From: Selaginella moellendorffii
Taxonomy: Eukaryota > Plantae > Lycopodiophyta
DNA length: 64,000 nucleotides
Assembly (NCBI RefSeq): GCF_000143415.4
Contig: NW_003314316.1
Span: forward strand, 515,220 to 579,219
Direction of reading: 5' to 3'
Shown here: piece by piece, positions 43,416 to 47,020 of the stretch
Layout of the letters: each line of letters opens with the position of its first letter
How positions within the stretch are numbered: position 1 is the stretch's first letter
The notes under the pieces: generated by a model
Database searches by the model: none
Told to the model about the DNA's origin: nothing
Seen by the model: the letters and a program-made list of their open reading frames with translations, nothing else
Program-made: the position numbers and the translations under genes

Positions 43416-45312
43416 TCATCTTCTCTTGGTTGCTCTAGAGGCATCACAAGGCCGACAGAGCTTTCTTCTCTTGTTACCAAACCCTGAGCACGATCGATGC
43501 ACTTGTTGCCTACAAGAGTAACACACCATGTCTGCTGTTGGTTGGCCGCAGGAGCACATTATGACAACAGATGGTGTCACTGCTACACCGGCAGGTAGTG
43601 CTATTGCTGCGACCTTGGCGGATGCTGCTGCTGCATTGGCAGATGGTGCTGGTGGTTGCCAGCGCCGATCCACAAATTCAAGCAACACACTAGCAATTCG
43701 CTGTGATGCAACATATGAAGCTACATCCATGAAGCTCCTTGCAATAACATCTACCGGGACATCTGTGCCTTCAAAGTTTTGAATAGTTGGAGGCACATTC
43801 GTCATTTCTTCTGGGTGGACAAACCATACAAACTTCCAACTAACTTCATTGGCTGGACTGGTTGTCCATGTTGTCGTAGGAGTTTTTAGAAATGCTTCCA
43901 GAGAGGATCGATGAGCAGCATAAGGTCCAACATTGATGTGACCCAACCAGATGGTGTTTTGCCATGTCCAGACGACATGGACCATACCGAAATTCGACTG
44001 GTCCCGAAAGTATGCCTTCACCCCTGAGACATTTCCGTCGTCGACAGTCTTGCGGAAACTTTCAAAAGAATACGGGCCATAAGGCACTAATTCTGTCTTC
44101 CAGCGCAGCCATCATCACCCTTTCAACCAGCCATTGAATGCGGCTCTTGTTCTTCAGCCGATCCTTCAGAGCATTTGACAATGTATTGCAGAACACCGTC
44201 TCTGATTCGCTGAGCAGCTTTCGGCTTTGCAAGCATTGGTAGTACAAGTCCCTTGCATAACTCGATACAGGATGATAAATGCCAGCTCCATCCCGTATAA
44301 CAAACTGCAAATCGATGTCTCCGTATTGCTTGACGTTTGCCACGCCAGTGCACACGAACTGTGCGTACCTGCTCACGTCCTGACAATAGAGGATGCTCGT
44401 CTCCAAGTTTGCGATCATATCGTCACCCCGAAACATCATAACTACTATCTCCCACTGGTCATCACTAAGGGCTATCTGTAGCTGTTGGTCTTCTACAATA
44501 GCCATCACACATCTTGCAATCAAAGTAACAAATAGAGGCAGCCTCCCAGTGTAGTATATCAGGTCTTTCTGGCGACCAGGTACCCACAGATTGAGACCCT
44601 TGGCTTAAACAAACACATCCATTTCTTGGTCGCTGAAGACGCTGAAAAAGCCAACGGGATCCACCACCTTCTTAATGCCTTCGTTTGTTGCTGTCAAACA
44701 TTTTAGGAAGCTCATGTGCTTCAGAAGAATATCCATCTCCTGCTGCACATCTGGGAGATGGTGTACCACGTCGTAGGCGTCGAAAACCAAGACTGGCCTG
44801 TGACGAATGAGGAAGGCTCCTATTTCCGTCCATTTTCCCATAGCCGATATTGCATCGACCTTGTCTTCCTGGTCGGCATATGCAAGAAGGAGAGCCCTTC
44901 TAACGACCTGCAGTGTTCCAACGGTGCTCACAGGGTCCGTGCAAGCGGGAGGGTCAAAGATCGCTACCAAGCGACAGCCTTCCTGTCGTCCCCTGGCATA
45001 ATGATTGCAAACCGCCATCGCAAGGAGCATCGTCTTACCCGAACCAGCCGTGCCAGTCATGGTGACGTCCCTGTTCTTGGAGCAGCGCTCAATCAAGGAC
45101 TCGATAAATGCAATGCTAGATCTTCCCATGAACTCACAGGTTTTCATGTAGTCCTTCCCTTGAATCCCTTCTATCATGCTGAGCTCCGCCCGTTTGAGAG
45201 TCAGCTCCGGCCAAGGAACATTCGTATGCCACCCGGTCCGGAAATCAGCTTGAGAGCCTAGGAGAAGAGCGTGCAGCTCTTTTGCTTCCGCAGTCTCCTC
45301 CGCCTCTACCAT
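43416..45312 (-). pseudogene. NTPase-REase-like gene A with C-terminal PHD finger (copy 2), one nonsense codon and one frameshift
   Basis: Walker A GTAGSGKT, Walker B RPVLVFD, TGRLPL, VSGVKAYF…SNFGMVHVV…WKFVWFVHP, and a C4HC3 finger at 43446-43556. TAA at 44605 and frameshift at ~44088. Confidence 0.8.
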
Positions 45313-45349
45313 TTTTTCCGCTATGTATCAAAATACATTTAGGGTTCTA

Positions 45350-47020
45350 ATGGAGGTTGACGCTAAGCAGCTTCATAGTGCTCTTAGAGGCCGCTACACG
45401 GACTTCAGCCGAGGCTGGCACGAAGCTGTCCCATGGCCGGAGCTCCTCGACTCGTGCCCCTCTTTCTGCTGCCTAGGCCGGCCGTCCGTGGCTCTCATTA
45501 CAGGTATGCTCCGCCGGTGCTTCAAATACGAAGGCTTGGTGCTCACTGGTAGCCTGGGCTCGGGAAAGTCTCACCTTTTAGCCATGGCCGTCTGTGAGCA
45601 CTACCAAAGCGGCCTCCAGGAGACCCATCGCATCGTCGCGCTCTTATTCCACGACGAGGTGCCCACCAGCCCGCCCGCCGCTCTGGAGCTTGTGATTCGG
45701 GCCCTGCTGCTCGCCTACGCGGACGACGAGGGCAGGATGCGGGTGATTCTCGATCTTCGCTGCTGGCGGGACGTGGGATCGTTTTTGATGTTCAACCGCC
45801 CGGTCCTCGTGGTTGACCGATGGGAGGAAATAGAGCTTGGCAATGGCGAAGTCCACCGCCGCATGGTGGAGCTGCTATGGATGACAACCTTTCTCAAGTG
45901 CGTGAACTGTTCCGGCTCGCGGGCGCGGCACGTGCTTAACAATCCAACCGAGTTCTACAACGTTTTCAGTCCCGACGAGACGCTCCAGTACCTTGGGAAG
46001 TGGCTGGACGTCAAGAGAATTGATGAAGAGCTGCTTCGACGGGTGATGTGCCTCACAGGTGGCCTCCCGCTCTTCGTGTGGTACTTTGTGGAATCCATCA
46101 TGCAAGCCAACAACAAAGGATCCTCATCGTCATTGTCATCCGGCTCACAATTGTTGGACTGGCGAGCAGCAGTGCGTGGGTTCATGCAAAAAGAATGGGT
46201 GGCGAAGATGCGGACGACGATTGCCAGCTGCGAGGACACTAGCCGGTTTGCGCGGTTCGTGAGCTTTGGACTGCAGGCAAACACGGGGCACTGCTCCGAT
46301 ATCGACATCCGTTTCCTCGTTCGGGATTCCAAGTGGATGCTTCACCCCGTCTCGGACTACGCCAGGGACATTTACTGGACGTGCCTGCAACGAAGGAACC
46401 TGCTGCATAAGTGTGAACCTGTCTTCTGCAATGCTGTGTATGATTCACTGAGGGACGTGCATGGGAATACAGACCGGTTCGAGTGGCTGCTCAAAAAGCT
46501 AATCATCGGGGCATTCGAAGATACGCCTTTCTTTCCTCAGCGCTTGACGCGCTCGAGACAATATCAGCCGCTGGAGCTCTTTTGTGACAAGATCGACGGC
46601 AGAGTGTCGGGGGTAAAGGCGTACGCTCCAGAAGCAGACACCAGTCTACCGTTAGTAGACTTTGTGGTGAAAAAAGGCAGCTCTCGGGAACCCGGAGAAG
46701 AAATAACACTGGGAAGGATATCGGCTGGTTCATATGCTTACGGAAGTGATGATCTTGTTCATAGGTTGCCCGGTGACAATATTTGGACGCCAGCAGCAGC
46801 AAAGGCATGCAAGTGGAACTTTGTGTGGATTCTGCTGCCATGGCAGATCCAGGGGTTTACGCCGCGGACGCACTCCTTCCTCGGGGGTGCGATGGAGGAG
46901 ATTGCGGTGGGCTTGGACGACGTTGCAAAGCACTTGAGAGGGACTTCACATGATCTTGTGTCTAACGTAATCGACGACTATATCTCTGCGGTGAGGCGTA
47001 CCTTTTCCTCCTCACTATAA
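45350..47020 (+). CDS. STAND-like P-loop NTPase + REase-like protein B (copy 2)
   Basis: Near-identical to 33194-34861 and intact. An in-frame upstream ATG lies at 45323. Confidence 0.75.
   Translation: MEVDAKQLHSALRGRYTDFSRGWHEAVPWPELLDSCPSFCCLGRPSVALITGMLRRCFKYEGLVLTGSLGSGKSHLLAMAVCEHYQSGLQETHRIVALLFHDEVPTSPPAALELVIRALLLAYADDEGRMRVILDLRCWRDVGSFLMFNRPVLVVDRWEEIELGNGEVHRRMVELLWMTTFLKCVNCSGSRARHVLNNPTEFYNVFSPDETLQYLGKWLDVKRIDEELLRRVMCLTGGLPLFVWYFVESIMQANNKGSSSSLSSGSQLLDWRAAVRGFMQKEWVAKMRTTIASCEDTSRFARFVSFGLQANTGHCSDIDIRFLVRDSKWMLHPVSDYARDIYWTCLQRRNLLHKCEPVFCNAVYDSLRDVHGNTDRFEWLLKKLIIGAFEDTPFFPQRLTRSRQYQPLELFCDKIDGRVSGVKAYAPEADTSLPLVDFVVKKGSSREPGEEITLGRISAGSYAYGSDDLVHRLPGDNIWTPAAAKACKWNFVWILLPWQIQGFTPRTHSFLGGAMEEIAVGLDDVAKHLRGTSHDLVSNVIDDYISAVRRTFSSSL

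Follow-up and report, generated by a model that had tools for sequence, protein, structure and literature searches.

Two divergent genes in a 64,000-nt stretch of the Selaginella moellendorffii genome (hereafter the window, whose positions serve as coordinates throughout) belong to a family in which a STAND-like P-loop nucleoside triphosphatase (NTPase) is joined to a C-terminal domain resembling restriction endonucleases (REases). We call these genes A (43416-45312, − strand) and B (45350-47020, + strand). Our preferred reading, to which we give a probability of roughly 0.7, is that the locus is a head-to-head inverted duplicate of header-less Crinkler/RHS-type (CR) genes in a birth-and-death family, with A lost from the other haplotype. 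An earlier prediction made from the DNA sequence (hereafter the original prediction) had seen in the pair an undescribed two-gene module, either an immune or cell-death pair or a selfish element. This attractive reading of a new two-gene immune module is corrected here: its guess at the family was right, the gene order was over-read, and the A/B locus is a case of ordinary gene birth and death in a known family.

The paralogy of A and B is real and far beyond chance, as had been proposed. BLASTP matches extend over all three parts of the proteins, with 39% identity in the NTPase part (E 2e-45), 42% in the middle part (E 1e-34) and 31% in the C-terminal part (E 9e-9), and the three pieces into which A is broken align to B in the same order. 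The motifs named in the original prediction are also present in both genes: Walker A (GTAGSGKT in A, GSLGSGKS in B), Walker B (VLVFD and VLVVD), TG.LPL (TGRLPL and TGGLPL), and a C-terminal block running from VSGVKAY to WKFVW in A and WNFVW in B. In a tree of the family, A branched as sister to the B copies (SH-aLRT 100) within a loose Selaginella grouping, and the pair would therefore stem from an old inverted duplication in this lineage. At its C-terminus A has gained or kept a PHD-like Cys4-His-Cys3 finger (43419-43556, − strand; pattern C-x-C-x8-C-x2-C-x4-H-x2-C-x10-C-x2-C) that has no counterpart in B, and that matches Pfam PHD_2 under the cut-off (E 0.008, 16.1 bits).

A is not intact but a pseudogene, carrying one nonsense codon and one frameshift. 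It is left as three open reading frame (ORF) pieces (45312-44605, 44604-44062 and 44087-43416): a premature in-frame TAA lies at 44605-44607 (− strand), past which the homology to B carries on, and the frame changes within 44040-44095 (− strand), where the homology (…AALED / DGNVSGVKAY…) resumes in another frame. The public gene model SELMODRAFT_422201 (43382-45312, − strand), to which the first 232 residues of A are 100% identical, uses three mini-introns to skip the stop codon and the frameshift, together with some of the C-terminal finger, and these delete residues that are conserved in B, for example DGNVSGVKAY. The forced mini-introns are likely a gene-predictor artefact over a pseudogene, and we flag this model as one in which a pseudogene is masked by forced introns. 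For the analyses reported here, A was handled as separate pieces or through SELMODRAFT_422201. B is an intact single ORF of 556 aa, 95% identical to SELMODRAFT_421276 of S. moellendorffii; its start was picked by homology with P0001 and with B', a second copy described below, and an alternative in-frame ATG upstream at 45323 (+ strand) would yield 565 aa. The two divergent ATGs (45312 and 45350) are separated by a 37-bp spacer (45313-45349). The original description of two divergent intronless genes thus holds for the spacing and for B, and fails for A with its TAA and frameshift.

A comparison of copies of the locus argues that the pairing is not maintained. A second unit with the same head-to-head orientation is found 12 kb upstream in the window, consisting of B' (33194-34861, + strand; a second intact B copy of 555 aa) and an adjoining decayed A-type remnant, A' (31955-33170, − strand). 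A' is 72-94% identical to A, with one segment inverted (32508-33010) and about 650 nt of NTPase coding sequence gone. From B through 10 kb of the genes downstream, the sequence L001 matches the window at 97.5% identity and evidently represents the other haplotype; it holds a single B with an A' stump upstream and lacks A, an arrangement that unequal exchange between B' and B would produce. In two sets of RNA-library contigs only B is covered (45535-46787), at low depth, and no contig in either set falls on A, although for A this is a weak test. Two raw-read runs, X8 and X9, placed no reads anywhere on the window and so carry no weight for either gene. With A a pseudogene, A' a stump, L001 holding only B and the RNA-library contigs lying off A, the proposed two-gene module, A-B heteromer or sensor/helper pair is not supported.

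The wider family points the same way. The original prediction had put forward head-to-head co-occurrence of homologs as its check, and had named homologs occurring mostly as unlinked single genes as the outcome that would speak against it. We found no head-to-head pair at the six other Selaginella paralog loci (L002-L007). A lone family gene is present at four of the six (L003, L005, L006 and L007), accompanied at L006 by the decayed remains of a family member 3 kb farther downstream in the same orientation; L002 is a head-to-tail tandem of family genes; and at L004 the gene SELMODRAFT_427148 sits amid decayed family remnants, convergent and distant (L004:3735-4082 and L004:12405-13105, both − strand), which fits birth-and-death turnover. 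The other paralogs are lone, in tandem or beside decayed fragments, which is the outcome so named. Neither a profile search of 1.84 billion representatives nor a word-indexed search with the A model turned up a further A-type protein. We consider the pair, on this comparison of sequences, to be probably a relic of duplication rather than an obligate two-gene module.

The assignment to a family rests on a Pfam NACHT match on A, profile searches and fold matches, and these uphold the original call of a STAND-like NTPase joined to a Crinkler/RHS-type REase-like domain. The Pfam matches, all to P-loop families, are weak: NACHT scored 29.3 bits on the first piece of A, where the cut-off is 26.7, but just 14 bits on B. 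Pfam recognized no family on the C-terminal third of A or B, nor on the C-termini of all family members. There was no Pfam Crinkler match, which would indicate a header, on A or B, and the LPxP/NTPase module of B begins after no more than about 25 residues. An exhaustive HMMER search with a profile built from A, B, B' and P0001 (E ≤ 1e-3) retrieved only 34 proteins from the 1.84 billion representatives. Those from Selaginella are SELMODRAFT_416740-2, 413536, 427148, 428724/403302 and 418749; the others come from Rhizophagus, Onygenales fungi and the amoebozoan Phalansterium, together with one Acaulospora protein and metagenomic or unassigned fragments. The Rhizophagus protein P0005 matched the profile at E 2.8e-8 and itself scores 37.8 bits with Pfam Crinkler, and P0027/P0031, also matched, belong to clusters that UniRef names as Crinkler N-terminal domain proteins.

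All matches have in common the motifs LPxP, GRxxF, GxGKS, ALLLAxADD, VVDxxN and TGxxPL, and the full-length members have an extra C-terminal block, G(F/Y)xxE … P…VD … QI[TS] … H.DSE..FF … FxWIT. The full-length alignment of the family is co-linear from the NTPase through the C-terminal VD…QI[TS]…FxW block, and the consensus motifs are retained in P0009 (Logan contig L008), a relative that is intact. When B, a 17-sequence alignment or the A model was used as query in word-indexed protein searches, almost nothing but self was retrieved; with 8000 candidates scored, these searches carry little weight. Since A and B are linked to Crinkler-header proteins by motifs, by the HMMER search and by full-length fold, we file them as header-less members of the CR family, an assignment that is supported. 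Contrary to the original prediction, the family is not undescribed: Zhang et al. 2016 had already reported CR proteins from land plants, according to the summary of that work in PMC5289972, and its content is also relayed in PMC12957317. The proteins SELMODRAFT_421276 and 422201, barely touched by Pfam, now find a place in the Crinkler/RHS NTPase-nuclease-like family.

Two further points on the family may be recorded. The nearest non-plant relatives are arbuscular-mycorrhizal fungi, and we considered a transfer from them; the Selaginella proteins do not group inside the fungal clade, but with its long branches and uncertain root the tree speaks neither for nor against transfer. In SELMODRAFT_428724 the C-terminal region (P0019:520-674) is a tandem Cys-rich repeat, …CSGFVN.NRCK..KRGA.EPYFCCPAHEKQQQ…, which forms a zinc-finger-like tail with no Pfam match.

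The structure of B was modelled with AlphaFold2 from 41 aligned sequences (predicted local distance difference test, pLDDT, 68; predicted template modelling score, pTM, 0.69; an alignment of 6 rows gave pLDDT 40). The model is confident at residues 45-390 and weak at 390-556. In a Foldseek search against the PDB, the N-terminal part matched Apaf-1, CED-4, NOD2, NLRP3 and ORC/Cdc6 (probability 1.0, E ~1e-7 to 1e-6), and for residues ~30-390 the fold matches comprise Apaf-1, CED-4, NOD2, PAB2304 and TnsC. The nucleotide-binding domain (NBD), helical domain with GxP and winged helix of a STAND core are all found in the model, in which the N-terminal ~390 residues of B take the form of a STAND/ORC-type AAA+ core followed by a helical and a winged-helix domain. 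The layout of B is then an NTPase at ~30-260, a helical/winged-helix middle at 261-368 and an REase-like C-terminal domain at 369-525.

Comparison over the full length led again to Crinkler-header proteins. Among AlphaFold database (AFDB) clusters, proteins named 'Crinkler effector protein N-terminal domain-containing' matched B over residues ~5-550 with template modelling (TM) scores of 0.53-0.55, while a Cavenderia 'Crinkler family protein' reached only TM 0.39, below 0.5, at rank 30. In the ESM Atlas, Mucoromycota clusters matched over 465-473 residues (TM 0.66-0.67), and 88% of one such cluster carries Pfam Crinkler. Two more Selaginella proteins are among the AFDB matches, of which D8SS92 is annotated 'PHD-type domain-containing'; this structural relative and the PHD-like finger of A together hint at chromatin reading by some members of the family.

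For the C-terminal domain alone, the nearest neighbours by language-model features were a large oomycete cluster and clusters of trypanosomatid RHSP proteins, neighbours shared with the C-terminus of a Crinkler protein from Rhizophagus, and Mrr_cat restriction endonucleases appeared further down the ranking (score 0.75). The modelled topology consists of a helix (374-391), strands at 418-425, 438-444 and 451-459, a further helix and a strand at 486-494, with an aspartate on strand 2 (pLDDT 45-67), and is compatible at low confidence with an REase fold, which we infer for this domain. The polar residues of the family are a glutamate on the helix, an aspartate on strand 2 and a glutamine on strand 3; B has K, D and R at these positions, and A has E, H and H. 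The canonical PD-(D/E)xK set is not found on strands 2 and 3: the family consensus, VD … QI[TS], has no lysine. The PD-(D/E)xK pattern of the original prediction therefore survives as a family motif and not as a canonical (D/E)xK, B reading VD … RIS and A reading VH … HIN; likewise, the fold search delivered the expected STAND-type NTPase and full-length Crinkler-header matches, and no solved REase. Since K and R replace the family's E and Q in B, this protein has more likely become a derivative that binds DNA or regulates than remained an active nuclease.

The history of the B copies can be followed in the DNA. B and B' are 96.6% identical over 33169-34916 (aligned to 45329-47075), a tract that reaches from 21 nt ahead of the ATG to 55 nt beyond the stop codon, and the flanking A/A' DNA is 72-94% identical. 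The synonymous divergence (dS) of B from B' is 0.04, equal to the allelic dS. The tract would fit either gene conversion confined to B, or a recent copy of B alone, replacing an older B' together with the 5' portion of A'.

Several observations weigh against our reading, both of B as a retained gene and of its C-terminus as an REase-like domain. The ratio of non-synonymous to synonymous substitution rates (dN/dS) among B, B' and the allelic copy is only moderately reduced (0.47-0.66 overall) and is ~1 in the NTPase third, and three open B frames would be expected under neutrality with P 0.07, which is not significant. The allelic B (SELMODRAFT_421276; L001:10001-11713) lacks one codon in Walker A, reading GSLG-GKS (window 45559). 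The libraries behind the RNA-library contigs are only guessed to be RNA (flagged 'RNA?'). For the C-terminal domain, the pLDDT is no higher than 45-67; a profile of the domain had no sequence match in the PDB, and Pfam likewise gave none for this region; hhalign on the domain alone was weak (E 7e-4, probability 26%); and structure searches against the PDB with Foldseek and VIA returned NTPase matches only and no solved nuclease.

Part of this evidence can be taken to mean that the whole locus is decaying, with B, B' and the allelic copy being young non-functional relics whose frames are open by chance. The dN/dS values and the neutral P would agree with this, as would the Walker A deletion, which recurs as the same 3-nt gap in an RNA-library contig of run X1, the low depth of the RNA-library contigs, and the exchange of the family-conserved E and Q in B. 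However, dN/dS in the C-terminal third is 0.2-0.4, non-synonymous substitutions among the B copies make up ~66% against 74% expected at random, and the indels among the three B copies are all in frame. Moreover, open frames persist in three of three B copies next to the decayed A and A', and RNA-library contigs lie over B, if they are taken as transcripts. We therefore regard decay of the entire locus as unlikely, and consider B to be under weak constraint, possibly on the C-terminal domain only, as far as substitution patterns can tell. At the opposite pole, A and B could act together as a heteromer of the sensor/helper or toxin/antidote kind, expressed from a shared 37-bp bidirectional promoter. 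The head-to-head layout with 37 bp between the ATGs, repeated in the orientation of A'-B', would be in line with such cooperation; so would the PHD-like finger of A alone, a possible integrated reader domain, and the complementary residues of the two proteins, A keeping the helix glutamate where B has lysine and B keeping the strand aspartate where A has histidine. But the nonsense codon and frameshift in A, the partly inverted A' without its NTPase, the other haplotype without A, the RNA-library contigs that miss A, the lack of any other intact A-type protein on record and the more distant paralogs that are not head to head have already largely refuted this possibility, which we now find hardly credible.

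The same features invite two more speculative histories. B might belong, as cargo or as core gene, to a mobile or selfish element with its roots in NTPase + REase transposon modules (a TnsC/MuB-like ATPase with a nuclease), in which case B' would have arisen by movement or by targeted conversion. There are, however, no terminal inverted repeats or target duplications around B or B', every close copy lies at this one locus or its allele with none dispersed, and gene conversion between tandem copies accounts for the B/B' tract equally well; this origin is very improbable. A quite improbable, though not outlandish, idea drawn by analogy is that Selaginella domesticated header-less Crinkler-type STAND + REase-like proteins for intracellular surveillance without leucine-rich repeats (LRRs), in the manner of the Avs-like STAND-nuclease receptors that prokaryotes use against viruses and with some members reading chromatin by a PHD finger, and that A and B would be a recently broken pair that once cooperated.

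If the preferred reading of an inverted duplicate in a birth-and-death family is right, a coherent if provisional picture follows. Each gene encodes a STAND/ORC-like P-loop NTPase, a helical and winged-helix middle and a C-terminal REase-like domain, in a family specific to the Selaginella lineage that would turn over through gene birth and loss. Open frames are kept by B and by its two copies, the tandem B' and the allelic one; B shows up at low depth in RNA-library contigs, and the constraint on these copies is weak. By analogy with STAND/ORC-type switches and with proposals for CR modules, B may bind and hydrolyse nucleotide and change its oligomeric state, and would thereby control a C-terminal domain that engages DNA. 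What is known of the family would suggest a role in genomic conflict or defence.

The surroundings of the genes were also inspected. Directly downstream of B is an ankyrin-repeat protein kinase gene (~47520-49440, − strand), and beyond it are PPR, ARM, Rrn7-like and F-box genes, all inferred from the annotation of the allelic L001. Between the two units, an ORF fragment (35330-35671, − strand) sits in GC-rich islands that are split by AT-rich stretches (GC 0.23-0.31); its sequence, …GMEPICSQAFGAG…, we take by eye only to be MATE-transporter-like. A dispersed repeat of ~600 bp (69-84% identity) occurs at 41380-42008 and 11976-12440 in the window and at L002:5901-6508, near the CR-like paralog. 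At L002 and L006, genes with a CHAT protease domain come after the CR-like NTPase gene on its own strand (L002:12546-21923 and L006:12529-15136), one of which also has TPR_MalT, and this may represent a recurring neighbourhood of conflict-type genes.

Among known systems, the NTPase part invites comparison with the STAND NTPases (NACHT/NB-ARC proteins: Apaf-1, CED-4, NOD2 and plant NLRs), with which A and B share a P-loop NBD, a helical domain with a GxP/GLPL-like TG.LPL and a winged helix. They differ in having no LRR, WD40 or TPR repeats by Pfam and no CARD, TIR or CC domain, and their C-terminus, modelled in B as a small alpha/beta domain, is REase-like. Moreover, STAND NLRs are no closer to the NTPase of B than are archaeal PAB2304/SSO1545, ORC/Cdc6, TnsC or mS29. 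Prokaryotic proteins that combine an ATPase with an REase fold (ATPase_2/AAA_14 with Mrr_cat, nSTAND with NA-iREase, and Avs-type proteins) likewise couple a STAND/AAA+ switch to an REase-fold domain; these were lower-ranked neighbours by features and structure, the likeness being one of architecture or of weak features (scores 0.71-0.90), with no significant sequence match and with a different order and partnership of domains.

Sensor/helper NLRs are found in head-to-head pairs, such as RGA4/RGA5 and RRS1/RPS4. The A/B locus resembles them in its divergent orientation, in its very short common upstream region and in the extra small domain of one partner, here the PHD-like finger of A. In contrast to those pairs, one partner here is a pseudogene and the pairing is kept neither in the allelic haplotype nor at the paralogous loci; furthermore, the paired NLRs comprise two distinct lineages of helpers and sensors, whereas A and B are each other's closest paralogs.

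The closest likeness is to the CR effectors, represented by P0005 and P0027 of Rhizophagus irregularis. These have the same order of motifs (LPxP, GxGKS, ALLLAxADD, VVDxxN, TGxxPL and the C-terminal VD…QI[TS]…FxW), the same order of NTPase, helical/helix-turn-helix (HTH) and C-terminal domains as A and B, and a full-length fold similar to that of B (TM 0.54-0.67). Relative to the family consensus, E and Q have become K and R in B, D and Q have become H and H in A, and A adds its PHD-like tail. The locus, with its allelic presence and absence, decayed partner, conversion tract confined to coding sequence and active-site drift, adds a worked example to the puzzle of why free-living plants should retain large, rapidly turning over families of modules that are best known as pathogen toxins. 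Whereas the CR effectors begin with a ubiquitin-like or other header and serve pathogens or symbionts, B is a header-less host gene of a free-living plant.

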